A stretch of DNA of 61,742 bases, filler included, from Choristocarpus tenellus KU-1152 (lineage: Eukaryota > Protista > Phaeophyceae): the NCBI GenBank assembly GCA_964200185.2. It is 5 parts of 5 records of this genome, joined end to end, with 100 filler letters (N's around TTAATTAATTAA, not from the genome) between each part and the next. Parts side by side here need not be neighbours in the genome. Positions count along the whole stretch, not along the records: positions 1 to 24,026 come from CAXNAD020000228.1; 4 more parts are not named here. One strand, given 5' to 3'. The stretch's first letter is position 1. Every line of letters starts with the position of its first letter. Under the pieces are notes generated by a model that was not told the DNA's origin, did no database searches, and saw only the letters and a program-made list of their open reading frames with translations. Of this stretch, positions 566-22,763 are shown piece after piece. Position numbers and translations under genes: made by a program.

Positions 566-3500
566 CTTTGCAATGACCCAATTTCGTCTTCCTTCCAGCA
601 CAGCCCTATTGAACTCCTTCATTGTGAACTTAGGCAGATGCAATTGGGACTTCACCCTCGCTAGTGCGGGCATATTCTAGTAGGACAGAATAGTTGGGGG
701 GTGGGGAAGTAGGGCAAGTAGATTGAACGAAGGTCTTGTCATAAATGGCGCAAGTTAGCAAACAAATTTAAATAATGATCCAGTATGACACTTAAGCACA
801 AATTACAGTAAGGGCGGGGATACCCCTAACAAGAAAGATCAGGTTGGGTGGATTTACTGCCGATGAGAAGTGACCCAGCGTGCCGGATATTGACATCAAC
901 ACGAGGCTCACCATGCAATATTACAATTCTTCTTCCATTGGTTCAAGTTTTCCTTTCTTGTTGATACATTGTAAGATATATGTGGCCTTGGGTTTGAAAA
1001 GGTGGGATGAATGTGCGATAATACCTAACTTAAAGTAGAATCTTAGTCCCATGCATCATCCAGAGCGATAACCTAAGGTATACAGGGTTGTATTACCTCC
1101 TGTTCAATCTGAATAAATCCCTCGTAAGTACAATAGCAATTTGACTCAAAAAGTGACCTTAAAGTACCTGCATTGATCAAAAAACAAAATGGAATTATTT
1201 GTTGCTCTGAGATAGAACAGAAGTAAAGAATTTCAAACCTAATGAAGAAAATGGTTCACCTTTGTGATTGCCTTCCACATTCCAGGCTCCCAATAACAGA
1301 AATGTGGAACAGAAAAAATACCTCAAGAAATCACACCCCTCAAACTCTGGACTGGAAGATTCATTAGAGTCCTAAGAGTCATGAGAAGCCAGAACAGGGA
1401 AAGGAAGGGTAACTTAATAATCACTTGAGTTGTCATGCACAAAATGCCATCACATCACTCCTTTCCATGCGATGGGTAGAGTTTCTCCTTGGCAAAAAAA
1501 AACTATACTGATGAAATCAACAGCACAGTCTTACAAACAATACTAAAAAAACTGAGCTAATAGAAGAACCCAAAAAACATTTCTCATCAGCACTTTAAAA
1601 GAGTTTTTTCCAGGATCAATTTGGGTGCTAACAACATTGAAACAGGTTGCAAAAAAGAACCCAGGACTGTTCACTCACACTGAAGAGAACATAACCCTAA
1701 CCCTAACCCTAACCCTAACATGACACTACTTGTTCAGTATCATTCCCTGGCACTAATGACCTAAAGCATATTAGTTAATTGCAGCATGTACTGTACTTGC
1801 TTCAAAAGTAAATGCTTAGGTTATGGTTAGGGTTAGCAATGAATCGAAGAGCACACAGCATACTTGTCATTAAAATAGATCGGGAAAAAGTATCCCTGGT
1901 ATCCAACCACCCTATCCCTAACTGCAACTCTAAGTCTCATTTCTCACATCTCTTCCTGTGGAAGGCACCTCAAATCTTGACCTAGATGATTTAGGAAGAA
2001 ACATAATCATATCCCCCACCACTTCCTGTACAAAGCATACACAATAATGTTGAAGTGAGTCTTGTGTATGTGTTGTGATAAAAATAAGGCCTGGGCAAGG
2101 GATTTATGCATATACCCCTAACCCTAACCCTAAGAACCATGTGGTCGAGAAGAAACTGCTAACCCTAACCCTAACAACCAACCAATAACCTTTGCTCCAT
2201 TGAATGGGTTTGTATTGGAGGCAAACACCATTATAAGATTGCATGCTAGCAGGCATACTTGACGCACATGGTCCACTCTAGTGCAGGCACCCAGAAAAAG
2301 CATTACTGACACTACATTTTCAGAAGTACATGGTACATTATAAATCATATCATTCTTGTGCAAAAGGATATCTTCAACATCCCACATGGCACCCATCGCT
2401 CATTTAACCAAAAGTCATGCTACAGATAACAAAAACATTTCAAATTCTGTGCTAAAATGATGCCTAGTTGTACTTTTTTCGGAAATTTTAATCTAGCCCT
2501 GCCTCAGCCCCTCGTTGTAACCCTAACCATAACCCTAACCACAAAACAAAACTAAAGCACTTATCAGAATATTCAACACCTGCACACTCCATCTGCAAAT
2601 GGTACATTCCTAGCCCTATATCTTGACTCTGATCCTAATCCTAATATAACCCCAATCCTAACGGTCAAGTGCAAGCTTATGTCAAGACATAGCTCAAAAC
2701 TTGACCGCAGTGATGACTCTGGTTAAAATCCCAAACAGTCCAAAGTCTTCAATCCAGCCCCAACCTCAACTCGAAGTACGACATGACATCAATGTCAACG
2801 TGAAATCCTACATCTGATCTTCTGTCCAACCTGTCTACCTCTCCTCATTTCTGGTCTGTTAGAAAATTACCTTGTAAGTGTAGCCAAAAATATGGTTGAA
2901 GACTTACGAAGTATATACAATGATAATAAAAACAATAATAATAGTTACTAAGAAATATAAAATTCACCACTTGACAAGAAGGGTGGCTTGCCTTGCATGA
3001 CAAGGTAAGGGGGGTGGGGAAGAAAGGAGAGTTCAAGAGTTATGGAGTTAAGAGTACAAAAAACCTCTTGACTTTTTTCTTGTTGCAGGAGTACAGATGT
3101 GTGCATAATCTTCAAAAATCTCTGGTACCCCACACAACAGGACCTCCTAAGGGACCCTAATAACCCTTAAATAAATGTCTAAACCTTTTTTGATCTCTGG
3201 TTAGGTTTTTTTCAATGTAAAAAAAAAAACGAGACATATCATTTAATACAAAAAAAAAACAGACCATTAAAAAAATAAAAAGAAACAATGCTCCGGAAAC
3301 TAAGAATGAACAAAGTCACATAAAAAAGTGACCTGCTTGATATTGTTCCAAAGCTTATTGAGCGATAATTTTCCGTCACAAGTCCACTTGGTGTGAACAC
3401 GGTGAAATTCCCAACCAAAGAATGACAGGAGGATCAACCCCATCCAAGCTGGAAACATGTAATCTGAGGTATTAAATGGGGGAGGGGACAGCATAGAGAT

Positions 3501-6500
3501 AGGGTTAGAGCCAGGTAAGGGAGAAAGGTGGTAAATGCCAATATTATGTGCAGGTGTTTTCATTGGTAGGGGTGGGGAACGAATAGTATGGTCTAGAATA
3601 CGTAAGTACTTGCCAGGCGTGTCTTAGCATTGAGATGCACGGCACTTGAGTGGTACCAAAAAAACTTATTCTGTGTCACAGACTACAACTAAACTCTTTA
3701 GCTGCTCTTCCTTCCACTTTTGCAGCAAGCTCTTCCTTCAAAGCAACAAAGATTTTGCAGCCCATCCAAACAAAATCCTCAGAGTTTGGGATAGTGCCAA
3801 TAAAAATGTTTAAATTTTCCTCACAAAACACCGTCAATTTAATTTTGGTACGAGCAAAATGCCAACATTTCCACTTAAAAAAAATAATGTTGCCAACTAG
3901 GGTTAGGGTTAGAAAAAACAATGCCATTCGCCAATAGAAAAAGCTAGGGCTCATTTAAAAAAAAGTGTCACAACTGTGAACACTTGGCTTTCATTTCCCT
4001 ATACATAGCATACACATTACTATCACCCTTAACACAAAATGGGTACAATCACACATACTCATTCAAACCTCTAACCCAGAGCTCCAACTTTCCCACCAAA
4101 AGCTACTCCAGAAGAGTGCAAACTAATAATGATACACCAAAGGTGGAAATGTAGAGCTCTAAGGTAGCTACGTACTCCACACCTAATGTTTTGTAGTGCC
4201 CTGAAAACGTTCGAGATGTCAATATTCAAACACAAAAGATAGCACAAATGTCCTTTCACTCACTCCTAATCACTGCAAAGCTGGTAAAGTTGTACAATGG
4301 GTCATCCCCTTCAAAACCCAAGCTGAAGATAGCATCTTCGGAGACAAGTTGTAGTCCATACCAACAGTTGAAAAAACCCAAAATTAGGATGATCCTCCCA
4401 AACCACTTGTGCATCTAGGTGGAGCTCGGCAAAACAGAGAATTTTCGGGTCAGGGCCAAGTAAGGGTAACAATAAATGCTGTAGTAAGTCATGCCAAGAC
4501 CAAAAAAGTAATGGTGACATGAAGCAGAGATGAATACATGACTCAAGCGACCAATTAAGCAGGGCTGAAGATTTGTTTACAACTTTGATGCATGAAATCT
4601 GTAGTGGGAAGATAGTTGGGAGAGGTAAAATAGTTACCAATAGAACATGCAAGTCTTGAAACTCCGCCTGGTAAAAAAGGGAAAAAATAAAAAATAAGCG
4701 ACTAACCCACCAATCATCTGCACCTTGTGTTTGTGTGTATTCATGATTCCTGTACGTATCATCTTCTGACGGTTACAACAATCCAACTTATATTTTATAG
4801 TAACAACCACACCTATCTTGAAAAAAATAAAAATGATGGTAAGATTGAGCGGTTGGAGACATGGTGGGAATAATTTTTTTTACAAGCCAAAAGAATAGTT
4901 GTAATATGTTGACTGTAGTCTTATTACTGAAGTGCATATTATTAATTTAAATATAGTGACTGTTATATAACTACTGAAGTATAGATCACTAAGTGAAATA
5001 TACTGACTTGCGTATTATTTCAGAAATACATGTTATTAAAACTCAACACCATTCAGAGCACTGGCATTCTCACATTGCAAGGGTTCATGCAATGGCAGTA
5101 TGCTAGCACAAAATCATTAACTAAGCAAATACTAGTAGTTAGAAGATGGTTGCTGAGCATTCCAGTTTGAGAACTTACGACCCTAATCCTAAGTGGATGA
5201 CTGCCAAAAATATGTAACACCAATACTCCTGCTCATATATTATCGACAATGTTGCAGGTGGAGAAGCATACCTTTACAAAGTACAATGAAAATGCTATGT
5301 AAGACCAAAAACCAAGCAGTACATAGGCTGCACAGTCACATATGTAGAGTATGTCGAGATTCTATACGCTGGAAGTCCTTTATCTGGCAAAGAGATAACA
5401 GGGACCATACAGTCAAGTTCATCTTGTTTTACGTCTCAATGGAGCAGCACTAATCACATTTTGTTTCACACCATTGAAATCTTCTGCCCTGACCTTAACC
5501 CCATTTTACACTAGGAATCCAGTGATCACAACGTAGCATGCTCATTCATCAGGTGGATAAAGGTACTCATATCAAGTACCCCCAGTGGTTCATAAGGATT
5601 AGGGTTACTTGGTATGCTTTATGTTAGCATCCGATCATATCAATAACCTTGTATTTTACCCAACTGTAAAGAATTGGTTGCAATCATCCGCAAGTCATAC
5701 CTGAAGGGTGACTTGAGCAAATAGAGTTCTGGTGTCCATCTTTCCCTCAAAGGTCCTTATCCTAAACCACCCAGTGATCAACTTAGTGTTGGGGTAGCGA
5801 GGAGTATAAAGGGACAGTGGCAATAAAGCAGTTGGGGGAAATGGCAACATTGGAAATAGCATCAGGTGACAGCACCAGTAATAACAATAATTGTAACAAT
5901 AATAATGATAATAATAATAATGATAATAATAATACTGTTACTGCTACTAAAAAAAAAATCGTTCTGGTTGGGAGAGTGAATGACAATATTATGGGATGGA
6001 ATAGAAGGCGCTTACAACATACAAAATGAATACTTCCCCTAGCATGCTTCGACTCAACTGCAAATCAGTTTGCATTCACATTTTAGATCAAACTACTTTT
6101 GAAATTGTCCAGAGTGGCAGGTGACTCAAACCCTAAAAATAGCAATTATTACGCTGTAAATCACCTAAGTAGGTAAAGGTGTGTGTGGAGACCTAGTATG
6201 CCATATAGAATTTAATGAAGTACTAAAAACTCACAAATGTGAACTTAGTTCACTGATACACCTGGGCAGAGAGCCAAACACATCATTATGTCGTGTTCAT
6301 CACCATCACAAATACTTACATATCACAATACGTATCTATTACAAATGCTTATCTTCCTGCTCAGAGTTGGTCAATGTAAGGAGGGGATACATTAATAATA
6401 TAACCCTCCTTGTCTAACCTCAAAGACATGTCTAACTCCTTCACCTATTGTGCTCAAGAACTCCAATAAAGTTCCACCCAACTTGAAGAGGAAATGGCCC

Positions 6501-9500
6501 CCGCAGGGAACTAGATATCAAGCATGATGATGTAGTTATGGTATAGACCTCAAAGTACTAGAATAAAGTTGTAATTTCCCTCAGAGAAAAAGTTGCACGA
6601 AACAGACTGAACACACATACACCCAAGATTAACACCAGAGACCCAACCACCCAGCTAGAGACAGTCCCTACAATTGCGAGTCAACAAATAGCACAAAAAA
6701 CCCTGCAAATAGCTGTCCATTTTGTTATTCCTATGAAGCTGTTGCAATTAGCTAAAGAGGAGTCAGAATCCAATGCATCACCTCGCTTACAAATCATAGT
6801 TAATCCACATGTTTAAATAAACTCAGGCAATATCAGATTTCAAAAGTAGGTTAGATATGTTAGATGACCGATCAAAACACTACCAAAAAACAGAGGGGAA
6901 GTTGTAAGACCTCCAAAGGGAAGCACCTGCAATATTACAGCTGCGAGGATCCCTGCACCAAGCTCAGAATGCCGAGTTGCCTCTATGGAATCCCCAGATG
7001 TTACAATGGCTGTAAATGCATATTTGAGTTGGGGCTAGGGTTAGTGGAAGACAGGGGTGGTTACAGTGAATATGAGGTTTGAGGTTTAGAGACCCAACCA
7101 ATCAAGTGTACAACTTATAGGAGACAACCGATAGTTCATAGCAAGGGGCAGGGGCCACCATTGAGACATCTGAATCTTTGAGAGATACCAAAAAAGAGCT
7201 CCAACTCTGTGATGTTAGATGTTACCTACCCTTCCCTTCACTTCACTTCTAGTCACCAACTAATCCTAACCCTCTCCCTAACGCTCATTGGTTTCTCTCC
7301 CTAATCCTTTCCACATACCTCATTTGAACACCAAGCTAACCATTATCTTTTTCAAGTTTCTTCCCTTAACCCTACTTCTAACTCTAACTCCCTGTTGTAT
7401 GTTGTCCCCAATGTGAGGGCTCCATCCTTTCTCATCATCTTCTAGCACAGTCTAGAAAGAGAATATATTCTAGACACCGGCCATGACATTGACAAGAAAA
7501 CATCTCAATAGGTCAAAGCAAATTTGCCCTTTGCATCTCTTTTCTAGTGCAATATGGTAGTATCTGCATTTGTCCTAACAGCATACATGTATTACTAGGA
7601 ATATTTTCAACGTACAAATATGCTACACCCACTACAGTGCTATGAACAAAAACTAAACAATACTATGTACCTTCATGTGGTAAGTGTTGACTTGGTCCTT
7701 CATACACTAAGAGAATGATAGAGTCAAAATCAGGTATCGTGCTGTGACATTGTTCAGAGGGCGGCACTGCAACAAAAACATCATACTCATTACGTAAGTA
7801 CAAAAAATGAACCAAATGATACAAACAGTAATCATCTAACGCAAAATAATAATAAGGAAATAGGAACAATAAAACGACACAGTACAGTAGTACTAGAAAA
7901 CTGGTATGTAGAGCAAACAATAAAAACATTATACATTGAAACCTCAGAGATCAACAAGCGATACTATTATTACTACTACTACTGCTGCTGCTGCTGCTAC
8001 TACTACTACTACTACTATATTGTGTATACGTAAAAAATCTCCCATCTCACCTGTAATGGCAAGAGGAATTACCCCTTCTGCCAATACACTCATGGCCAGA
8101 ACATGTAACTCTTGAGCAGCAGCATAGTAGACACAAATGACCAACAGGAGAAATTTTTTTTATGAAAAATTTATTGCAATTTTTGAAGTTCCCCAAGAGA
8201 AGTGAGTGACAAGCAACCAAACCAAAGGGGGTAAGAGGGCATGTAACAAGGGATAGGGTTATAAAACGAATCATGGATGAATAAAAAATTCAATCAATTG
8301 CTGGTTTATCGAATGGCACAGACTTCATCATCCACGCCAATCAGACGTACCTACTTGCATGTAGAACCAATCACTAGATAGCACCTTCAGAATACATAAC
8401 ATTTTGACAATCAGATCACTCACTTGGGTGAGGGAGATTGCAAAAGAAATACATTACATTGAGTGGGTTAAAGGTACAAATAGTACATCACCATATTGCT
8501 CAAAACACTGTTTTATTTTCTTCCCTACAACTCCAAAATTACTATCAATACTACATGCAACTGTTCTTAGGGGTATGTTATAAATAATCCATGTACAAAG
8601 ATCTCCAAACAATGTTTCAGGTCAAACTACCGTATGCTTTATTGTAGACTAGTGTCTGCAACAAATCGATTTCTCCTCCCTCTCCTCAACCTGGCCTACA
8701 TTCAACATGTTGGTGGCATCATAGCACTCCACATATTTCAGAGGTGACAAAGAAACTACAAGACGGTGACTTTATCAGCAATACTTGAAGCGGTGCACAG
8801 AGTTGCAGCTACAGAGCAGCAGAAGAGAAAAAAAATAGAACATAACCTACAGCACTACATTCAACAAAGATCCCACATGTACATCAGCTAGCATACAGGT
8901 GTATCTGAGAAACAGTGAATGGATGGAGAAGAGAAACAGTCCAACATACATGTGCATGTTCTCCTGCCATGAGAAGTTGAGGAAGCAGCTACCTGAGATT
9001 CAAACCAGTAACCTCTGAACTTTTCAACTTTTCAAGAAACGTCACCAGCAACATACCACCACGTCAGCATCCTCCGTGCAACTGCTGCCTTCATGGTAGA
9101 ATTGTATCAAACATGTCAACACGATATACTTTAAGAAGAGTTCCTCTAGAGCATACACGACCACTAATGATCAAATGACTTGTTCAAATTGCAGGTACAT
9201 GTTGAAAAGAAAAATTGTTCATAGTAGAGGTCAGCCTACATTCTCCCCATAAATATCATGCAACATACCCTTACAAGGTTATCAATGTGTGAAATTGTAA
9301 ACATACTTGATTCTGAGCACAATAGGTGAATTTCCGTCCCTTATTATTTCAGACAACTACACCATATAATTTTGCACCCTCCCATTCCTAACCCTAATCC
9401 CTTGCTCCCTGGCAAGTAGATGCCCTCTAGAGCTTCTCAAAAACAAAAACAATGATCCACATAGTGATAAATCATATTTCTAGGGTTGGGGTTAGAGCCA

Positions 9501-12500
9501 GGGCAAGTTAGAGCGAGTCTATCTGGTTTTCTCTTGGTGTAAAAGTGCTTACCCCACCATACCAGCCGAAAGTGGTAAACCTTAATGGAAACGCCACGCA
9601 TGTACCTGCCGAAAAAAAACAAGAACATGCACAAAAAGCAGTAACGACAAATCAATTTGAAAAAAGGTGCAAAGCATGACAAAACCAACATCACTAAAAG
9701 AGAGTTATAGGATAACAAAAAAAACACTATAATGGTTCCAAGTGCTATGACTTGCAGCAGAGTGGGTGGGCAAGAAGGAACACTGAACTGTTATGTGATC
9801 TCTAAAAGTGATCAAGTGACTCTCCACCTACTATATGCCTCAATAGAAGAGGGAGGGGGAGTAGGGGTCAGGGCACAGGGCAAAGGTTAGGAATAAAAAA
9901 CGATAAAAAATACATATTTTCAAAGTTGACTAGATTTACATATTATTTGTGGATCATGACTTTTACATGGAGAAGGAGATTGTACACCACTCCCATTACG
10001 CTGTGCATGAAACTTGCTTCAAAATATTTAATTTAAATGCTAAAAATGAAAAATAAAAAATAATTATGGCGAGGAGCAAACCCCCAAACAAGCAACACCA
10101 CAATATCTTCTTCAACTGTCCCACTTGATAACGCAATCTAAGTACTAAGTGCATACTGGAGTAGGGTTAGGGTTATACATGCTGAAGCTCTACAGAGAAA
10201 GAGAAGAATAGGGAGGAAGAGAGCTCTAAAAACATTTTAATTGGACATACTGAGAAAGCAAGAGACAAAGCACAGAAAAAATTACGTAACACACTACTCA
10301 CCTAGCACAGATGAAGCCTAGTGGTGCAGCAACAAGCCATGAAAACAACTTCATGGCATTGAAAGAACCACCCATGGAGGAACAAACACAACCAGCACCA
10401 GAATCCATACAACATTGATGCAGAAACACAAAAGGTCACACCCAACCGCCAAAGGTCAGGCAATGATAAAAGATGGAACCAAGACATTTCAAACGAAGAG
10501 TGTTAGCCTGATTAGGGTTAGGGTTTAGGGTTAGGGATGAAGACAAGATAGCGGTTAGGGCTAAGGTCACCTTGGCTCAAAGTATCGTAGAGGGTACGAT
10601 TTTTTTTCCTATTTGTCCATTTGGGGCTTGGAATTCCACAGGTATTTAATTACATTTTACCTACTCCAAAATGTTTCAGAGTAGTGAAATGTATACTTTA
10701 TGAAAAAGTGTCTCCAGAATAAGGATATTGACATCTCCCAACAAATACAATAGCCAAAGTTACATCAAAATTGCAACATTGGATTTTGACCCCCAAATGG
10801 ACGCGGCTCTACCCTCTAAGATACTTTGACTCCTTTACCTATCATGGAGTTACAATCAGTAGCAATTGCTTTCATCACATTGGTTTGGCATGATTCATGC
10901 TTGTCTAGAATATAAACATTGCAATGAAGTCCGTCTCATGTGCTAAAAAAGCAACAAAAAGGTACCCAACGAAGACAGTACACATTTCCAATCATTGAAA
11001 AGGATCTTTCAACAGCTGCAATAAGTCAAGAATGACTACTCTTTGATTCCTGTGCCAATTCGCAATTGACACAGAATTGACAAATGATGGCTTGTGGGTG
11101 GTAGGTCAACATATTGTCACACTACACTTGTACAGTGTGAGATAATCTATTTCTAGAGCGCTAATGCAAGAGAATGGATTACACATACTATCATCTCACA
11201 ATATTTCTACTCCTAGACCCAGCTCAGCATTGCCAGACACCTACAGTACTACACACTAAAAAAATCATTTCTCAGATTTAACAAACATCTCAACATTTTA
11301 AGAAAACCCTACCTCAAACCATTTCCCTAACCCTAGTTACTGTAGTCGTACCTCTCTTCCATCAATAGAGCTTTGAGCGTCTGCCTCATGTCCACGCCCC
11401 AAATCAAACATGCTCTCCAAGAATATTCCCCCAACCATAAACCTAACCCTCACAATGTTTCTTATTACCAACAAAAAAAAACTTAACCTTAACCCTAACC
11501 TTAATCTCATAGACCTCCTCTAACCCTAATCCTAACCCTAAACCTATATTCATACACTTATTGCTTGCCATGATGCTTCCATGAAACACATAGAAGTTCG
11601 AGTTGTCACTTGTTACCACAGAGGCGCACACGTTGCTGGTGAAGAAGTTGATGATAAGAGCACCTCGGTCTGTTCTAGTGTGTTCAGAGATCTTGAAACA
11701 GTAAAGAGTTGTTTTTTGTTGCAGTTTGTGTTCCCAGAAAAACGGAGGGGTACCAGGGAAAACCAAGTCAAACCTCGAAAATTCTTCATTTCTCACATCA
11801 GAGACACTAGGGACAACAAATGAGCTGTATGTGTGTGTGTGTGTGTTTGAAGATGTGTGATTAATAGCTGTATCATCTCCCATGACCTCTGTCTAAATTG
11901 CTCAAATTGCTATGCTGAGTGTATCCATGGATTGAGATGTAATCTCAAAATAATATCCAAGTCTTGTTCCCAAATGAAACATATCTTCATCTCATAAACA
12001 AAAAAATCATCTAGGTATCTTTTCACATTTCCAAAATTGTGTTTAAATTTTGATTTCTGAAGGAAATAGGGGGAAAACTGGAACAAGAGAAAACACAACC
12101 AAACCCTAACCCTATCCCACATATCTCAAAATGCTAATCATTCTAATTGTGGGAAGCGTCCTTCAAAAACACACTCTAAAAATATATAATTACAGTACTT
12201 GGAAAAGTATTTCAACAGAGAGGAAGATCAACTGTTCAAAAACGTCCCTTTCTAATATCTACTGCTAGGGTTAGGGACAAGAATTTGTACCATTTGAATC
12301 CTAAGATCATATACTCTAATATTTTGTGCCCAAGCACCTCATCCCTGTTCTTGTGGAAATTCTCTAGCAAAGAAGAGAGAGCAGTACAGTGTTCTTCTTT
12401 TTCTGTGCATTGGTATTCACAAAAATCTTTCATCAAATAAGTATCAAGTTCAACATGAAGTGGACAGATCAAAACCAGAGGAGAGAGTGTGGCTGCACCA

Positions 12501-15500
12501 TTAAAGTAATGGACTCAATTAAAAGAGCAGGAAATATTCTACACACAATAGTGACCAATACCCTGAAAGAAGAAGAGAAAAAGAGCTCAGTACAAATTTG
12601 TGAGTTGGGCTTTCAATGAAGTTAGACCGTAAACAACGATTAGTGCAATCACACTTCAAAAGGCATCACTGTGGAGGCTATTCACTTCAAAGGTCAACCA
12701 AGGTATACATTACAAGGTGATACCTATCCTAAGCTATCTCTACATGCCCCCAACAAAATTTGCATACGATAATGTTCTTAAAAAAACATCACAGTAAAAA
12801 AAATAATAATCAAAATATAATCCAATCCCAACCCTAACCCTAATTCATGTATCTCTCCCTTGCTAACAGAAAAAAGTGCGGCTCTAACCCTAACCATTCG
12901 ATACGTGATAGTAACCCCTAACCCTAACTGTACAATGAATAGTAGATGACACAACAATATATTAGGAAAAAAATACACAATAATTTGTTCAATTGGTGGT
13001 GAATGTTCCTTGTTACTATCTCTTACCCCGGCCCCTGAGCTCCATGAATAGACAACCTCAATGTCTGTGTTTGTGATGTTGAAGTTATTCAAACCTCCAC
13101 CACCTGGTTGCAAAAAGTACACGCACACCAAAACAAACAAAATGCGTGTCGGGGATAAACTCACTCACAAATCACATAGGGTTAGGGCTATGGTTGGGCC
13201 TATGGTTAAGGTTAATGTCAAACACAACCTAATCCTAACCCTAACCCTAGTTCTAAAACTCCTAACTATACTTCCTACTAGCAAAAAAAATGTTGTTCAG
13301 GCAAATATTGAGTAGTAACATTTCAATAGTACCAGTAAATACAAAATAAATGTTTTGTGCTACCACTAGGTGAAAAAAGCCATCATATTCCCAACAGTCC
13401 TAATTTCAAAAAGTAGCAAAATTTAAAAATCCCAACACCTTAGGAAAGCGTGCACCATAAGCTTAATGGTAGTCTGCCATAAGCCTACTGATACGCATGT
13501 TCATCACCTATAATGACCATAACCCTACTGATATGTATGTTCATCACAACCCTACTGATAATGACCATAACCCTACTTACTCAAAAGCAAAGTCTACCTA
13601 GCACAGACTTCACACAACCTGTGTCTAATGTGCAACAAGTACCACCACACCACACATATGCTTAGTGACCTGGTAGTGTGAAATATATTCATATCTACTG
13701 TGTATCAGAAAGCCCAACATGATCTGCTGTGGTTGCTAGTCATGTTTCAATAACCTAGACACCAAGAGTACGTAGCTTTTCTTCTACCTGTTCTTTTATA
13801 CCTTGACCCTAACCCTAACCCTTGAATAGTGTATGATAATATGCTATAATTGGCAGCATAAATTGGACAAGTGACAACTCAAGTCCCAAGACCCTAGTCA
13901 ACCAACACCGCCTCAAGGATGGAAGAAGAGAAGGATCTGCAACCCAGGGGACATGCACAAATTCAGAGGAGTGAATGCGTATGGATTACTCAAACAAATT
14001 TATCAGAAAACTACAGTTAGACACATATTGTATATGAATTTAATCTTACATATTCCTACTTCGAGGTGACCTCTGATAATGGTTCTCTGTTGAAGGAGTA
14101 CAATGACTTCCACTAATCTCTCAAATCACCCACTGTGGACTTCAGTAGTTGAAAACAAGGTGGTAACAACCCAATTGCATAGAAAAAGCCCTAACCCCAC
14201 CTCCTGTATGATGTAACTCTGACATATGTTTAGAACAAAATACTGGTTTAATGAAAATAGATCTCTATAGGGAGCAAAAGCCTGACCATCCTACCACAAA
14301 TTGGACCCTATCCTTATCCCCACCTGCAATAGCACTTGTGGCAGAATAATAATATTAATCAAAACCCTAACACTAACCCAAACTTTCTCCTACTTGAAAT
14401 CATGAAGACACACCACACACTAACCACAGTAGTAAAGAATTGCTTCTGTTAAGTAACTCTGCATTAAATGTCCTTTTAATTAACGGATACAAAAAAAAAA
14501 ATCAACTTGACCCTTAAAAACTAACCCTAACTCTAACCCCCTCAAAAGGAACACAACAATGAGTCGTTCTTGCAAGACACACAAAGACTACAAGAAAATA
14601 AAAACATGAAACGCATTTACACACTTCACCCAAACTAACTAATCCCTAGTCCTAAACCCTACTGTGTCCGGTTGGTCTTGCACATCGAAACATTCACCAT
14701 GTCTTCATATCCTACTATGCTACAAGTAGGTTAATAGCAGCACAGAGCTAACACAGTTCAAGTTACAGATACAGGTACAGGCATAAAACCCACCATCCAA
14801 AGGCCTCACAAAGGTCACACTGGTCCAACTGTCGATGACATCCACCTCAAGCACATCAAATTCATCCCCACTCACTCCCCCAGCACCTCCATTAATGCCG
14901 TCCCTGGTGGGTTCCCTGTGACCAGCTGCTATGCGGTCAGTGCAGATAGCCTCATCTGCACTCTGTTGACAAGTGGTTGAAATAATAAATATACTATCAA
15001 AATAACAATCAAAAGATGATAGACAGAAGGGTTCTACATTCGCGAAAATTCATCTCTCAACTGCACCACCTATACCCATACAAGTGACTTAGGTTATGTT
15101 CTCTCCCAGAATACACTTGAAGTAGAACCATACAATACCACCTTTTTTCCAGTCATGAGTAATCTCCACCTCATTCCAACCATCTAAAAACACCTGCAAT
15201 ACCTTCATACCATGTGCTACCTATGGAGATTCAATTTTCTGCTCAGATCACCAGTTGCCCCTTGCCGACAGCTGTCACCTCATACTTACAATATCCAATT
15301 TGAGAAAGAACTATAATAGTTACAGCCATATGCCAACATATTTTTTGCTTCTATAAGTAATATAGGTAGAAGGGAAGGGGGCACTACAACTATAGTTACA
15401 GATATCCATTGTTTCAAGTCTGGAAATTGCTACAAGTATATTTCATGTTCAAAGCACTGGCAAAACACAATGGAACTGATGTGCTCGTACATACATAGTT

Positions 15501-18500
15501 TGGTTAAGGTGTTAAAAAAGTGTCAACAGATGGGTTGACACCTCAACTATCATGCAACAGAGGATTTAAGGTCTGCACAAACTTGATACAGACCTGATTC
15601 TGACTTAACACTGGCTTAATACTGACTTGGTACTCTCAAAGAACATACATCACAGGGTGTATTCATATTTACAAGTGCTAGAATACAATGTAGTCACTAT
15701 TTTCAAAAAAATCAAGAGTCACCACAACCCAAGCATCCAAACGATTTTCAAGGCTTATCAGTGGTAACAATTACAGTTATGCTACATTCAAAATAGCAGT
15801 GTTATGTTGTAGGAAGCAAGACATTGCCAAGAGGAGAATATCGATATATAGTATATGACGAAATGATGGATATTTAAAAACCAAACCTTTAGAAATGAAT
15901 ACCTAGAAGTGTTTGTGTGAATATCCTGAATAACCCTAACCCAATCAAAACTATCATCCACCTACGAAATTGAAATAAACAGATACATAAGTGTAATATT
16001 CTTGAACATTAGAAGTATACTGAAATAGAAGTTAGAAGTAGGGATTGGGTTGGGGGTAGGAACCGGATCACCTTTACTTCACAAAGAACCATGTCCGTGC
16101 CAGCCATAGTAACTTGACCCCACCCAAACCCCTGAGAGATGCAACATCGAGACAGAGAGATTGGGAAAGAGTAACAAAGTGCTGGTGTCATCTACAAGTT
16201 ACAAGAATACTTAGGGTTCGGGTAAGGATTAACCTAACCTTAAGTGATAAATAATACTACTTGGTTTAATAGCTACAGCTGTGAATCCAGATAATTCCAA
16301 TCAAGCCAGTTTGTAACTAATGGAGAAATGACTGGTATTGTCATTGGGTGTTTGTGGAAACACTCTTTGATTCACCTCTTGACATGACTGTAGAGGTCGG
16401 CACAAACTCTCAATTTGTGTCACAAAACACCCAAATCCCATACATATATCCTACTTTGAATCAAAAACTACTTTTAATTTGATGTATGAAATAATTCATA
16501 TATCAGAAAACTTGAGCAATTGAAGATTGTGATGATAACAGGATCAAGGGTGCCACTTAAACACTAAAGGATGCTTTACAAATAATAGCTTAGACGAATA
16601 TGATCAGGAAGACAAAGCAAGGTCATTTCAAAAGCATTAGATCTATTTCATGGCATGTTTTAAGCTTGAAGTGATGAACTCTTGCATGTTGTGTAAATAT
16701 TCTAATGGAGGAAAGTACGACTTAATAAAAAAAATTATTGCTTTGACCTGCAGAAGACACACATATGGGGATGTTCTCACACCCAACCCTAACACCAACC
16801 CAAATCCACAGTCCAATCGCTGTGAGTATGCCTAAGGCATATGGAGACAGTTAGGAGTCCCTGCCACACACGCCTATCCCAAATCTTCAGCCTTGCTTCA
16901 TCAAACATGTGTTCATCATCTGCTTCTAGTTGTGGAGAAAGAGCACACAAAAAAAACTAAGTAGAAACGTTCACATCTCAGTGCATAGTAAACATGTTAC
17001 AAAAAAAACTACTAGAGATGTCTATCACAATTTTTTATAATATTAGTACACATTGATTACTATTGCCCACACCTTTCAAAATGAATATCACTGTACAGAT
17101 GAGAAAGTACTTTCTTTATTCTTAAATGTTCAGCATCAGAACAACTATTATTGATTGGGTGCACTGAAAAAAAATGGAACCAGTGACGTATAGAATGATA
17201 CACGATTTTGACTCACCACACAAATAATCAAAAACAAGTCAGAAGATCAAGGATAACCAAGATGTGAGGGAAAAGCAAAATTAGCACCAATGAATGACCA
17301 TATTTTGTTCTGACCCATAAGATCATTTGCATCAGAATGCAGTCTAGCCCTAACCTAAACCTAACCCTAACCCGATGACTATTTTTTGCTCTGAGTCAAT
17401 AAAATGGTTGTGCTTAAAGACCAAGAATTTGGGTCGGCATTTGATTTTGTAGCAAACATATTTCAAACCATCAGATAAAATTTCCATGTTCAAATCAACA
17501 TGTACAGTTGCATTGAGCAGCCGCACAATACCTTTGAGGGAAATGAGTGAAAATAGACTTTTTCATATCTGGATTTTTTGTTCTAAGATGATTCCCCAAT
17601 GACAAACGACAAAAAGGTTCCACTATAAATGTTCCACTTTTGAATGTCTTGCCCTTGGACACATCTATGAATGAAAAACTTCAGAGTGCATGGACACAAA
17701 TTTTTCAAGATTCAGTTTCTAAAGACAGATGTGAAAGCGAACAACAGACATCCACCAAAACACCTTAATCAAGGCTACCTGCCTGGCAATGAAATACCAC
17801 CACCGCTTACCTTAACATTATAATTTCAGTATCAATATCAGCACCAGTACCAGGGTTAAGGTGGGCCAACAAAATCAGGAAATTTCTTTCAGGCAGGTTA
17901 CTATCTAATTGAGGAGACGTACAGTATACACTGATGACTTAGAAAATAGAGGTTGGTGGATCAGTGCGACACAATGATATTGGCTGCTAGCAGGATCAGC
18001 ACCTTTCCAAGTACAGTACGTAGTCAATAGTCACCATCACCTATGAAGGTATACCCTACCACCAACCAAAATGCATCCCTAAACCAAAATGCTGCCTGTG
18101 TGAGTGTCAATGGGCTTACGTCAAGAGAGGAGAAAAAATTATGTCGAAAATAAGGGCACGTACTGTATGGGGAGGGAAAGAAAATTGTCAGGGTGGAAGC
18201 CCCCACTGCCCCATTCCACTCCCATGTAAACACAAGTGCCCCCGTTTTCCAGTCACCATTTCAACCTTGAAGGAATATGCGAGGATGTGATGCAAACTGT
18301 GTGCAAGTGTTACGGAGGCACTCCTTGGATAGCATTTGTCAACCCTTTTGGAGTACTTACTTCCACAGCGTGAACAAAACACAGATAGAATATTGAACAC
18401 ACTGAAAGCTGTTCATATCTATTCTGGTGTGCTTAAAATAGTAACAACAATCGTTGTGCAACCCTTACACTAACCCTAACCCTAACCCAACAATTTGACG

Positions 18501-21500
18501 AAATGGGAAGAATGATCTTGCTTTCCTTGTGTGTAGCAGGGATGTAGACATGGTTTTCCAAAATGTAGCGGTCAACGGTTTTCCCCCAAAAAACGGAAAA
18601 TTGTAACCCACTCAAACAGCACATACATGGAGTGGGTGGGTTGGTATGACAGCAAAGGGCTTACAGCTGATAGTGCAGGTATATATCAACACTCCAATGA
18701 TTCTCACAATTATACCATACCACCCACCCAGACTACTAAGCAAATTACATCTCTAACCCTGAGTACAACACAGAAGGAAAATTGATACACCTCAAGTCGT
18801 GCATGGGGACATCTACAGATAAATACAGGCTTATCATGAGAGCAGATAGTTGTAGATAGTTGTGAGAGGTATGAAGGGAGTAAGATTGGGGAGTAAGTTT
18901 AATGGGACAACAGGCCTTCAAAAAGAATCCTTTTTTATAGAAGATTAGGTTAGGATGAGGGTTAAGATGTTTAGAGTTAAGGACAGAATAAGCCCAGTGG
19001 AGAATACTCAATAAACCCTGACCCTATTGCTGACAAACAGTAAAAAATGTATCTCAGAAGCCTGAATTAAACCATTCACAAGTTGTCTAAATTGAGCTCT
19101 ATAATCTCTAACACAATTAGTTACGCAGGAACTATTTGGAACCAACTATTCCAGGGGCAATGACACTTGACATAGTAACACAAGCACCAGAGCTCACCAT
19201 CATGCCATCAGTGCCCAATCCGAAGACGCTTCAAAAAAGAAGGCAAGGAAGGGCCACATTGTCATTGTTTCCAACCAATTGATTGTCACCATTGCATGCA
19301 TCAGGGGGACATGGGAGACATGCGGATGGATTGAGAGATATCAGATGTAATGGCATACCTAACTCTAAGACAATCACTAACCCTAAGTGAAGAGAAAGGG
19401 TTAGGGTTAGGGAGGACAAACTAAGGGGCCAACATGTGACAGACCATGTTAGGGACTCAACTATGGAATAATAGACGCAGGTTGTCATTGGGGAATAAAA
19501 CAATGTAATAGCATATTCTTGAGATTCATCTCACAGGTTTTGCTACAAACCCTAACCCTGAAACTAGTATGAGCGTTATGAGATGTTTCATTGCACAAGC
19601 GAAACATGTCACAGTCATAGACACAATTGCCTTTATCGTTACCGCTCTTGTAAGAGCCTGTCTGTCTTGTCCCTAGCTATCTTAGTTCTGCCACCATAAG
19701 GACTTAGGGCTGGCTTGAGAACACGAAGAGGTGGTGCATCAAAGTCCACACATCAATACAGATCATTGGAAGTCAAGCCAATGTCCAGTTTGTTGCCCAA
19801 CTCAATAGGACCAGAAAGAATCAACCATTGCCAGAAATTCAACTCTGCACATCACTCAAGGTCTGTTCATCACTTTCAGATGTTTCAAACTTCCTCCAGT
19901 CGGAACTAAATGTAACATAGATTTGTAGCCCCAATAAAAAAGCAAGACTTCTTTCATGTGTTCATATTTGATGGGTGTGTATTGTGCAGACACTAAAGGG
20001 TAGAGCACCAAAACCCCAAGCTAAACGAGGCAGCCTAAACCTGTCTATAATTCCACCCCGAAGCCCTCCAAATCTCCATTCCAGCACAGTACTTCGCCGC
20101 ATTCTGGGGCGTTTGAGGTGAGCTTGCCCGCCTTCTCAGCCTTTTCCTTGCGAAGATGGGAAATTTGAAGGCACTGTCGCCCTTGGATCCCAGCACTTCA
20201 CCATACACTACTAAGGGACTCTGCCAGACGTGCTATAACGTCTCCCGGAGGTACATATCGAACGCCTTCATTGCTGCCTCCATCAGCTCCTCTGAGTTTG
20301 ACACCTCTAACCCTAACATTTAGTTGCTGGATGTAATGAATTCCAGGTCATTGATGTTGAGGTCAGGTGAGTTGACTGACCGGGTCTATATGACAATGTA
20401 ATATCCCTCACACATCACCCCCCTTGCGACATAGTACAATGTCCATACATTCACCCCATGCAATCTGGCTGTCATACTCCTTCAGATGACAGAACACAGT
20501 GATTCGGGAAATTCCAAAGTCCTCCATGATGGCCACAGGCATCCGCCAGGGCACCCGAGTCTCACACACTCTCGCCTCCAGGCATCGTGTGCCACCACGC
20601 TGTTCTTTGCCGGGGTGTTGGAGTCCTGACTCCGGACAGACTTCTGATGGGCAATAACAGGATGAGCGAGCTACTCAAATAAAGGGGGGCCTTCATCCTA
20701 GGCATCCCAATGAACACCTGCTTTGACAGTTTCACGACTTGGTCGACTTTGCACTGGTGCTCTTCCACAGCCATGACATCCCACAATCTCAAACTTTGCA
20801 CACCTCCCAGTCTATATGACAACCCTGCCCCATCCAGAGGGTTTCATTACGGTTTATCACATGGGTCACTCCTGGGCTAGAACAGAGCTTGCAAGAGTTT
20901 TGTTACATTTAATTCCGAATGGAGGAAGTACGTGTTGATACAACTCATCACAAAACTTGCTAAGTTCTTCTGTCAATGGAAAGGTTATTTCAATATGCAC
21001 CTACTAGATCCTGACAAACGCAAATCCACAAATTGAAAGGATAAGATTACATGGTTGAAAAAAATTACAAAATACTTGACAAATAAAAAACTTGCACCAA
21101 CTCTAAGGTTAGATCCTGACCCAAAACAAATAGAGAACGACATGAAACCTCACCCCACCCCCACCTTCCCGCTTATCTGAACTGCCCCAATCCACCAATC
21201 CCTTCCCCACCCCCACCTCAGTGTCATTGTCAATGTCCCTGCATCACCATCTACCACCCAAGCAGCCTCCATTGAATCTTCAAGAAGGTCTGCTGAACCC
21301 TCATAGACTGATGCCAGCGCTGATGGTGAAGGGGTGGGGCTAGGGATGGCTACCTGCAGAGCCCTCTGTGCCTGCAACCTACTCTGCCGATGGCGTTGCC
21401 GTTGCCGTTGCCGTTGGCGCTGTTGGTGCTGCTGTTGTCTATTTCGTTTATTTGGTCGTTGCTGAGGTTGTGGTTGCCATCTCTGCTTCAGATCATATGA

Positions 21501-22763
21501 AGGAGGTCAACAGGGTAAAAGCAGAGTAGGGCAAAAGAGGGTGTGACAAAAGGTCCCAAGAATTCCCATTCCATTTGGTCAATATGATTTGCAAACTGTT
21601 CTAAGGGTGAAAGACTTGCTGTCTGAGTCATAACATTGCTGATCACCCAATTGATCATGTCTCCTTAGTATGATAAAAATTGTGGGCTATTCATCTCCTG
21701 TAAGCAAGCAGAGCAAATATCTGTTCATATTTCAACAAGTAGGTAGTGGACGATCAAGTGTCTGCCTGAAACACAGCAACATATCAGCAATCTACATATT
21801 TGTGAGGTATCCAAAAAGGTGGGGCATCCACTCCCCAAACTATTGCAACTTCTCCTGTGTAGTCATTTACCTCTGTATATAAAACATATCTACCATATAT
21901 GGAGGTGGATGTGGGAAGCAGTAGGCATGTGGGAGGTATTTGGAAGGATCAATTGAAGCAGAATTCACACCTTCAACACGAGAAAAAAAATGTTTTACAC
22001 ATGAAATGGCTTTTACTGAAAATAACTCTTGATCAAGTACTGCAAAAGAAAAAATTCCTCCCTCTTCTTTTTAGCTGCAGCTTTAGCCCTACTGCCAATG
22101 ATAGACCCAAGGTGCATCTGGCAAACACAAATCATTCTTAACAGTCAAATCAAGTCCTAGAATCCTCCAGCCCTAAACCTAAACCTAAACCTAAACCTAA
22201 ACCTAAACACACTTGTTACATGTCCTTGTGTGCTTGTGTGTGAAGTCTGAAGGAAAGCATAAGCATTTCTGTGCCTCTAATATACAATTGAAATTAATGC
22301 GTTTTGAAATCATGCATGCCTACTTGTGTGCACAATGAGGCGTATTTATGTGATCCATACACCGTAGAGGTACTCAGAGCTTATCCCCTCGGATCCTTTA
22401 ACCAATCTAAGTGCTCCAGCATACGACACAAGAAAGAACTCCAACCATATCATAGACACCAGGGATTAACTGCTTCTACTCGATACAAGAGGGTGTCGAA
22501 GCAGTGTACAAATCGTGAGATAGAAACTCAAACGAGGTAGCCCTCAGTCCACACACTAAAAATGTTGCATCCACCCCTTAGTCCGGAGACAGACAAAATC
22601 AATGGCGTATGCACACCTGCTGTTCTCCTCCTGCCCTTCCCCCCACATTGCTTCCCCAGCCACTCACAGGTGCTGCCCCACGTACGAAACAGGTCACGGT
22701 GACAGCTGATAACACTATGGATACCCGCATTAGACTATACGCATGAAATCTCCACCCCAGCAT
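566..22763 (-). CDS. DOMON + cytochrome b561 + cytochrome b5-like multidomain membrane redox protein (CYBDOM/FRRS1-like); 15 exons; continues past the left window edge
   Basis: Exons (-): 22763-22668, 21482-21217, 19228-19198, 16131-16072, 14962-14794, 13103-13027, 11691-11569, 10348-10302, 9605-9553, 8110-8051, 7009-6927, 5781-5701, 4414-4264, 3463-3333, 676-566. Total 1539 nt/513 codons, all phases match, no stops. Signal-like MRVSIVLSAVTVTCFVRG. DOMON motifs: YEGSADLLEDSMEAAWVVD; GMMGFGWGQVTMAGTDMV (heme Met); TSVTFVRPLD; VYSWSSGAGISEHTRTDRGALIINF (heme His). Four b561 His: FHGSIMLFSWLVAAPLGFICARYMR, WWELHV, RHSELGAGILAAVILQLITGWFR, MHKWFGRIILILGFFNCWYGL. A fifth TM (PAWMGLILLSFFGWEF) is followed by LPKFTMKEFNRAVLEGRRNWVIAK, resembling a cyt b5 N-terminus. 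Small extra exons cannot be excluded. Confidence 0.85.
5879..5935. repeat. Imperfect (AAT)n microsatellite
   Basis: aataacaataattgtaacaataataatgataataataat... Confidence 0.85.
7963..8017. repeat. Compound (ATT/ACT/GCT)n microsatellite
   Basis: actattattactactactactgctgctgctgctgctactactactact. Confidence 0.85.
10574..10832 (+). mobile_element. ~260-bp MITE (GAG..CTC TIR family), intronic copy
   Basis: TIRs ggctcaaagtatcgtagagggta / taccctctaagatactttgactc; interior homologous to 40650-40909 and 41994-42249; flanks cctt/cttt. Confidence 0.85.
13484..13577. repeat. Local tandem duplication (~40-bp unit)
   Basis: cctactgata..atgttcatcac..ataatgaccataaccctac repeated about 2.5 times. Confidence 0.7.
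20110..20560 (-). mobile_element. Degenerate Tc1/mariner (DD39D/plant-mariner-like) transposase remnant in intron 2 of the DOMON-b561 gene
   Basis: Minus frame: IMEDFGISRITVFCHLKE (HTH-like), then NSPDLNINDLEF...EELMEAAMKAFD...TL*HVWQS...VYGEVLGSKGDSAFKFPHLRKEKAEKAGKL. This matches the SPDLNxxDLGF...KIPH..K C-terminus of that clade. Contains stops and an internal deletion. Confidence 0.75.

Follow-up and report, generated by a model that had tools for sequence, protein, structure and literature searches.

The window analyzed here is a stretch of DNA of 61,742 nucleotides (nt), of which positions 1-24026 are the complete contig C228 from the assembly of the brown alga (Phaeophyceae) Choristocarpus tenellus (164 Mb in 27,310 contigs). 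The minus strand of C228 carries a multi-exon gene, which runs from position 22763 down to 566 and is cut off by the contig end at position 1. It counts 13 in-frame exons totaling 1359 nt (453 codons), with consistent phases, no stop codon, and five codons split between exons, all of them sense. In order, the 453 codons specify a predicted signal peptide, a DOMON domain that has both heme ligands (Met and His), five membrane helices, a linker, and, up to about position 19, the beginning of a cytochrome b5 (b5) domain. These 453 codons, on 13-14 exons over 22 kb, are probably the 5' portion of a gene whose product would be a transmembrane electron wire in a single chain. An original prediction for this locus had described an in-frame, multi-exon gene on the minus strand between the same positions, which the stop-free and phase-consistent model bears out; it had counted 15 exons of 31-266 nt, where the model has 13 of 47-171 nt (14 if an exon of a GenBank model, at 2025-1948, is included).

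The model was assembled exon by exon, using splice sites, phases, and homology to relatives, and its splice junctions are predicted. The relatives include P0004, a 1484-amino-acid protein from Discosporangium mesarthrocarpum, and P0007, a 1341-amino-acid GenBank model from Choristocarpus contig C173 (Choristocarpus is usually placed with Discosporangium in an early-branching order). The contigs compared with C228 are C171, C173, C2832, C583, C1484, C1177, C1929, and C6939. GenBank also holds a partial protein of the C228 gene itself, P0001 (CAM9148476.1; 153 amino acids, unnamed product). The features of the gene are as follows, in the direction of the coding strand.

22668-22763, minus strand: exon E1, 96 nt; start codon and signal-peptide-like hydrophobic N-terminus (judged by eye); donor GTGAGT.
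21183-21353, minus strand: exon E2, 171 nt; Pro/Ser linker and first DOMON strands; end set by eye against paralogs and P0004.
16078-16131, minus strand: exon E3, 54 nt; DOMON strand with the heme-ligand Met (TMAGTD at 16110-16093); intron position as in C583.
14794-14962, minus strand: exon E4, 169 nt; central DOMON strands; matches P0004 at E 7e-4 and the family profile at E 1e-3.
13027-13103, minus strand: exon E5, 77 nt; DOMON strands; placed by phase and colinearity with relatives.
11569-11691, minus strand: exon E6, 123 nt; DOMON ligand His (SEHT at 11688-11677), start of helix A, and first b561 His (FHGSIM); GC donor.
10302-10348, minus strand: exon E7, 47 nt; remainder of helix A, to a conserved Arg.
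9553-9605, minus strand: exon E8, 53 nt; cytosolic loop (RYMRG...), exceeding its counterpart in relatives by 8 residues; strong acceptor and donor.
8219-8245, minus strand: exon-like relic (YMPSYPLWF), resembling relatives; donor in the correct phase, no AG acceptor.
8051-8110, minus strand: exon E9, 60 nt; helix B with the second b561 His (ELHV).
6879-7009, minus strand: exon E10, 131 nt; helix C, bearing the third b561 His; the donor GTTTTG is weak.
4264-4414, minus strand: exon E11, 151 nt; helix D, bearing the fourth b561 His (MHKWFGR; HKWFG helix at 4411), and outer loop; first exon of P0001.
3333-3448, minus strand: exon E12, 116 nt; encodes the fifth membrane helix, then enters the cytosolic linker.
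1948-2025, minus strand: optional linker exon, 78 nt, in frame; in P0001 only; good CAG acceptor and GTGAGA donor; no homology support.
566-676, minus strand: exon E13, 111 nt; cytosolic linker and Cyt-b5 positions ~1-19 (ending WVIAK), phase 0, donor GTGTGC; last exon of the contig.

All six heme ligands encoded on C228 are retained, i.e., the DOMON Met and His and the four b561 His, the latter in E6, E9, E10, and E11 as anticipated. The TMAGTD, SEHT, and HKWFG motifs lie where the original prediction had placed them, as does the tail peptide (637-566). Eleven introns are of the GT-AG type. Intron 6 is taken as GC-AG because this is the only in-frame solution giving the canonical His-to-Trp spacing in the first b561 helix; the resulting end of E6 sets this spacing at 8, the same as in P0004 and P0007. 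Two other solutions were rejected: a frameshift at 10350-10400 with apparent loss of the first b561 His (the His sits in E6, and the region is intron), and an extra exon between 6927 and 4414 (E10 extends to 6879). The nine-codon relic at 8219-8245 lies 108 nt upstream of E9. Its length agrees more closely with that in the relatives than the length of E8 does, and it may be the remnant of an older exon boundary.

P0001 matches exons E11-E13 letter for letter. It differs from the model by an E12 acceptor located 15 nt upstream (3463), in frame, and by the extra 78-nt exon at 2025-1948, and it lacks the whole of 22763-6879, which encodes DOMON together with b561 helices A to C. As GenBank thus annotates 153 residues of this gene, surveys relying on current gene models would miss it.

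Homology to relatives supports the exon series. A profile of P0004 and P0007 yields seven matches at E<1 on C228, all on the minus strand and colinear (profile positions 569 to 917), and zero on the plus strand of the contig; tblastn with P0004 retrieves the same colinear exon series. Against the paralog exon profiles, E11 reaches 31.8 bits (E 7e-9) and E3 16.8 bits (E 3e-4). At the DOMON ligand positions, the Met of E3 and the His of E6 fall on the Met and His that are conserved in P0004, P0007, and the paralogs, and the His of E6, E9, E10, and E11 align with H686, H718, H748, and H789 of P0004. One could suppose that chance open frames in non-coding DNA have been mistaken for a gene, given that no single exon scores above a Pfam threshold, but this is refuted by the seven colinear, same-strand profile matches, by the E value of E11, and by the fact that part of the series is already annotated in GenBank. 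The multi-exon gene on C228 is real.

The relatives indicate what such a gene would look like when complete. P0004 and P0007 share the domain order An_peroxidase, DOMON, Cytochrom_B561, Cyt-b5, FAD_binding_6, and NAD_binding_1. For DOMON (PF03351, cut-off 32.7 bits), they score 68 and 45 bits, respectively; for Cytochrom_B561 (PF03188, cut-off 23), P0004 scores 27.9 bits, P0007 18.2, and a C171 exon 20. The module for flavin adenine dinucleotide (FAD) and nicotinamide adenine dinucleotide (NAD) binding (PF00970 and PF00175) gives 41 and 24 bits in P0004, and 22.3 bits in a C171 exon (cut-off 21.1). The RxY(T/S) FAD and GGxGxxP NAD motifs are present, along with scores above the Pfam cut-offs, in P0004 and in the C171 exon. 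The second b5 heme His (HS..A region) is found in P0004, P0007, C171, C583, and C1484. No ferric-reductase transmembrane domain (PF01794) appears in the Pfam scans of P0004 and P0007, which contain b561 instead.

In P0004, five hydrophobic helices follow the DOMON domain, four of them with a His at their start, which places the peroxidase and DOMON outside and the b5 and reductase in the cytosol (N-out/C-in). Searches of the PDB with the C-terminal half of P0004 return NADH-cytochrome b5 reductases (E 3e-8), cytochromes b5 (E 1e-4), and nitrate reductase. Sequence searches of the PDB with the E11 profile and with P0004:520-880 gave no match; a paralog b5 exon retrieved no more than a b5 match at 13 bits. 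In the low-confidence structural model of P0004:515-880, the better-modelled sandwich retrieves folds of the DOMON superfamily, with CBM9, the DOMON of dopamine beta-hydroxylase, and the cytochrome domain of cellobiose dehydrogenase at the top of the Foldseek matches. The fold search also lists clusters of plant DUF568/b561/DOMON and mollusc Reeler/DOMON/b561 proteins.

Within Choristocarpus, the family falls into two subgroups. On C171, C173, and C2832, the exon series from DOMON to NAD is intact, without any stop, at 60-97% amino acid identity, and peroxidase exons lie upstream. GenBank holds these three peroxidase-bearing paralogs only as unnamed products. The second, more distant subgroup, in which peroxidase was not detected, comprises C583, C1484, C1177, and C228; C583 covers DOMON to the C-terminus, C1484 is cut at its 5' side and covers b5 onward, and C1177 covers FAD to the C-terminus. 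The C228 gene appears to lack an N-terminal peroxidase, because it has its own start codon and signal-like N-terminus, and because no peroxidase exon was detected by the family profile in the remaining 1.26 kb upstream of E1. A flavin reductase module is found in every complete relative. Three to four paralogous loci, the two GenBank models, and exons bridging their domains show the family architecture to be DOMON–b561–b5–FAD/NAD reductase, to which one subgroup adds an N-terminal animal-type heme peroxidase.

Since P0004 and P0007 are automatic, unnamed models, it might be argued that separate neighboring genes, with a DOMON-b561 protein beside a b5-reductase, were merged into these long proteins. 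Nevertheless, every domain boundary is spanned by a single exon: DOMON end to helix A by E6 and its paralog exon, helix E to linker on C171, linker to b5 start by E13, b5 end to FAD start on C171 and in P0004 (residues 950-995), and FAD end to NAD start on C1177. These border-crossing exons argue that the long relatives are not merged gene models. Four to five paralogous loci show the same order and strand, as does a second species, in which the Discosporangium gene encoding P0004 is one 17.8-kb gene call. On C228 itself, E13 alone carries both the linker that follows helix 5 and the first b5 strand. Merged models are, therefore, a very improbable explanation, and the long chain is preferred.

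The tail of the C228 gene is the point at which it would join this architecture. The suggestion that the tail begins a b5 fold holds: E13 can be matched residue for residue to the linker and first b5 strand of C583, C1484, P0004, and P0007. The b5 exons of C583 and C1484 (Pfam E 2e-12 and 4e-13) carry the same residues followed by HPGG within one exon. On C228, E13 ends in phase 0, at the residue corresponding to position 19 of the Cyt-b5 profile (PF00173, cut-off 23.7 bits); positions ~1-19 contain no heme ligand. No second copy of the E13 tail exon was found in a genome search. As for the claim that the protein continues past b561, unlike plant CYBDOM and animal FRRS1, it is borne out on C228 up to the entry of E13 into the b5 domain, and, further on, by the b5 and reductase present in all complete relatives.

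An HPGG exon coming next had been named as support for this claim. Extension leftward past position 1, as had been proposed, stops at once, since contig C228 ends there. A complementary exon, nevertheless, exists elsewhere in the genome: contig C1929 bears an orphan exon of 29 codons, 226 nt from its right end, on the strand running into the contig, with a good acceptor and the HPGG motif. It covers Cyt-b5 profile positions 20-48 in phase 0, scores 28.4 bits on its own, and is the only orphan second-part b5 exon among the genome matches to the C1484 b5 exon. The C1929 HPGG exon is likely the next exon after E13, as judged from residue and phase, although it lies on a separate contig and its link to C228 is inferred. 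C1484 and C583 were rejected as continuations of C228, and are separate paralogs, because their b5 exons overlap E13.

The flavin reductase that the original prediction had placed beyond the contig can be followed in part. C1177 carries a reductase cut at its 5' side, of the same subgroup as C228 (family profile E 1e-7), whose C-terminal exon is 52% identical to its C583 counterpart. This reductase may be the 3' part of the C228 gene. C6939 was also considered as a continuation, and was rejected as a generic b5 reductase. C228 and C1177 share a further trait, in the form of a high density of TTAGGG-like (TTAGGG)2-4 repeats, with 35 on C228 against 0.2 expected by chance and 8 on C1177, compared with 0-1 at the other paralog loci (C171, C173, C2832, C583, and C1484); C1929 has 2. 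Such repeats could mark a subtelomeric or repeat-seeded region, or be intron-associated elements. Those of C228 are intronic, with 26 of the 35 on the gene strand and several located 24-28 nt behind a donor.

Several points weigh against reading the C228 gene as the first part of an electron wire. Concerning the gene model, intron 6 requires a GC donor, and the donors of E2 (GTTCAG) and E10 (GTTTTG) are weak. The two public runs that contain the C228 stretch are DNA contigs with the same end base as the assembly (position 1), so that the splice junctions stand as predictions. P0001 places a further exon between 3333 and 676. The junction of 3333 to 676 put forward by the original prediction is in the same frame in the 13-exon model; if P0001 is right, the two are not joined directly, yet the tail stays in the same frame and transcript. 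Searched singly, together with stop-free frames, none of the C228 exons reaches a Pfam threshold, and C228 is not among the matches of genome-wide Pfam scans for b561, DOMON, and Cyt-b5; the domain assignments on C228 rest, for this reason, on the relatives. The Pfam domains that had been suggested for a check are found in P0004 and P0007, and not in single C228 exons. The AlphaFold model of the relative (P0004:515-880), built from a shallow alignment, has a predicted local distance difference test (pLDDT) of 58, with a sandwich at about 70-82.

Concerning continuity, the links between C228, C1929, and C1177 are inferential, and 11.8 kb of C1929 searched past the HPGG exon contains no further family exon (rest of b5, linker). 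Three contig ends (C228 1-23, positions 1-32 of the C1177 locus extract L009, and the right end of C1929) carry, reading inward, a C-run and an identical 14-nt string, at which read depth is ~40 times the local depth. This shared string looks technical or very high-copy, and the shared 23-nt end string was, as technical-looking, rejected as evidence of adjacency. Lastly, the wire function, donor preference, acceptor, and physiological role are all predicted; the strength of the case is limited by the cut contig, with splicing and function read from sequence.

Part of this would also fit a gene encoding only a DOMON-b561 protein of the CYBDOM/FRRS1 kind, ending in a decayed b5 stub or being a pseudogene, with the C1929 and C1177 pieces belonging to other paralogs. 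The gene is cut by the contig end, with no b5-like exon in the 565 bases that follow E13; the GC donor, the two weak donors, and the acceptor-less relic could signal decay; and C1484, another 5'-cut paralog, illustrates that orphan pieces exist. What makes such decay unlikely is that 13 of 13 exons are open with the six heme ligands retained, and that the first residue of the C1929 exon follows directly on the last of E13, in the same phase, with an intron at a position that has none in the paralogs examined (C171, C583, and C1484). Moreover, no more than a single orphan first part and a single orphan second part came out of the genome searches. The 5' part of a longer wire gene remains, on balance, the probable identity of the C228 gene.

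A mechanism can be proposed for the complete chain, which would consist, in order, of a signal peptide, an extracellular heme-b DOMON, five helices holding two bis-His b561 hemes, a linker, b5, and a module binding FAD and the reduced nicotinamide cofactors NADH or NADPH (NAD(P)H). NAD(P)H would reduce FAD in the cytosolic, b5-reductase-like module, and FAD would then reduce the b5 heme. From there, electrons would pass to the cytosolic-side b561 heme (held by the His of helices B and D), then to its outer counterpart (bound by the His of helices A and C), and on to the DOMON heme b (Met/His), which would deliver them to an external acceptor, such as Fe(III), Cu(II), O2, or a partner enzyme. 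Ascorbate would not be required in this path. In the peroxidase-bearing paralogs, the same wire would end beside an extracellular heme peroxidase, in a DUOX-like layout made from different parts.

Several known systems resemble portions of this chain. Plant CYBDOM (CRR, HYP1) and animal FRRS1/SDR2 proteins reduce ferric iron across the membrane, are driven by cytosolic ascorbate, and end soon after b561 (PMC10784552, PMC10784544). The C228 family shares with them an extracellular heme DOMON followed by a b561 core with four His, but its chain continues into b5 and, in the relatives, into an FAD/NAD(P)H reductase, and the sequence similarity is remote. With NOX, DUOX, and FRE proteins, it has in common cytosolic NAD(P)H, FAD, two stacked membrane hemes, and electron delivery to the outside. 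DUOX has an outer peroxidase-like domain, and the peroxidase-bearing paralogs mirror it in this respect. The membrane domain of the C228 family is, however, b561, with extra b5 and DOMON hemes, and its reductase, in contrast to those of NOX and FRE, is of the b5-reductase type (the NAD_binding_6 match is weak). NCB5OR/CYB5R4 and the heme-FAD part of nitrate reductase also have b5 directly followed by an FNR-type FAD/NADH domain, but these are soluble and have cytosolic partners, whereas the C228-family module would be anchored to the two hemes of the membrane domain. Cellobiose dehydrogenase, whose cytochrome domain ranks near the top in the fold search, uses a DOMON-type heme b (Met/His) to pass electrons to outside acceptors; unlike the C228 family, it is secreted, has a GMC sugar-oxidoreductase flavin domain, and is without b561 or b5.

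In the full-text literature searched, no description was found of a DOMON-b561 protein carrying either b5 with a reductase or a peroxidase in the same chain, and the brown-algal genome paper mentions neither DOMON nor b561. The architecture is present in databases under automatic names, is not unique to C228, and is, as far as seen, uncharacterized. To our knowledge, the known self-contained systems carrying electrons from NAD(P)H to the outside are all of the NOX/FRE type. If the proposed reading is correct, a b5 reductase and b5 wired to a b561 pair and a DOMON heme would constitute a third solution, in the form of a natural five-cofactor wire, and a candidate for iron or copper reduction or for an oxidative burst at the brown-algal cell surface, the peroxidase-fused paralogs being a convergent counterpart of DUOX.

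The distribution of the family was explored in several ways. The E11 profile, made from four paralogs, was scored against 1.84 billion representative proteins, and gave six matches: the C228 fragment, a C171 fragment, P0004, a chytrid DOMON-b561 protein, and two repeat proteins (with bacterial Ig/cadherin-like and chitobiase-type domains), which are regarded as noise. Word-based protein searches retrieved only P0004 and P0007 as relatives, and no mid-length relatives among the 8000 candidates scored, a number that makes their negative results say little. A feature search of the ESM Atlas provides two leads: a 54-member eukaryotic cluster of ~995 amino acids, most often from ciliates, combining Cyt-b5, DOMON, and FAD_binding_6, and a 179-member cluster of ~1490 amino acids, combining An_peroxidase, Cyt-b5, and DOMON. 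The DOMON-b561-b5-reductase architecture may, thus, be wider than brown algae. With a confidence that falls a little short of an even chance, it can be suggested that brown algae of the lineage of Choristocarpus and Discosporangium, and perhaps ciliates and others, possess transmembrane heme reductases driven by NAD(P)H that form a second class, assembled independently (b5 reductase, b5, b561, and DOMON, with four hemes and one flavin), whose peroxidase-fused members would be DUOX analogues, feeding or re-reducing an extracellular peroxidase.

The Atlas fold search also lists a 75-member fungal (Mucoromycota) cluster combining An_peroxidase and DOMON, so that such fusions may predate the brown-algal family. 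One further feature of the C228 locus is a repeat.

10520-10840, strand not assigned: dispersed repeat of ~300 nt in intron 6 of the C228 gene; also in introns of C171, C1484, C6939, C1177, and C1929.

Copies of this repeat lie in both orientations, their translations being up to 72-90% identical, and one is found at 600-840 of the C171 locus extract (L003).

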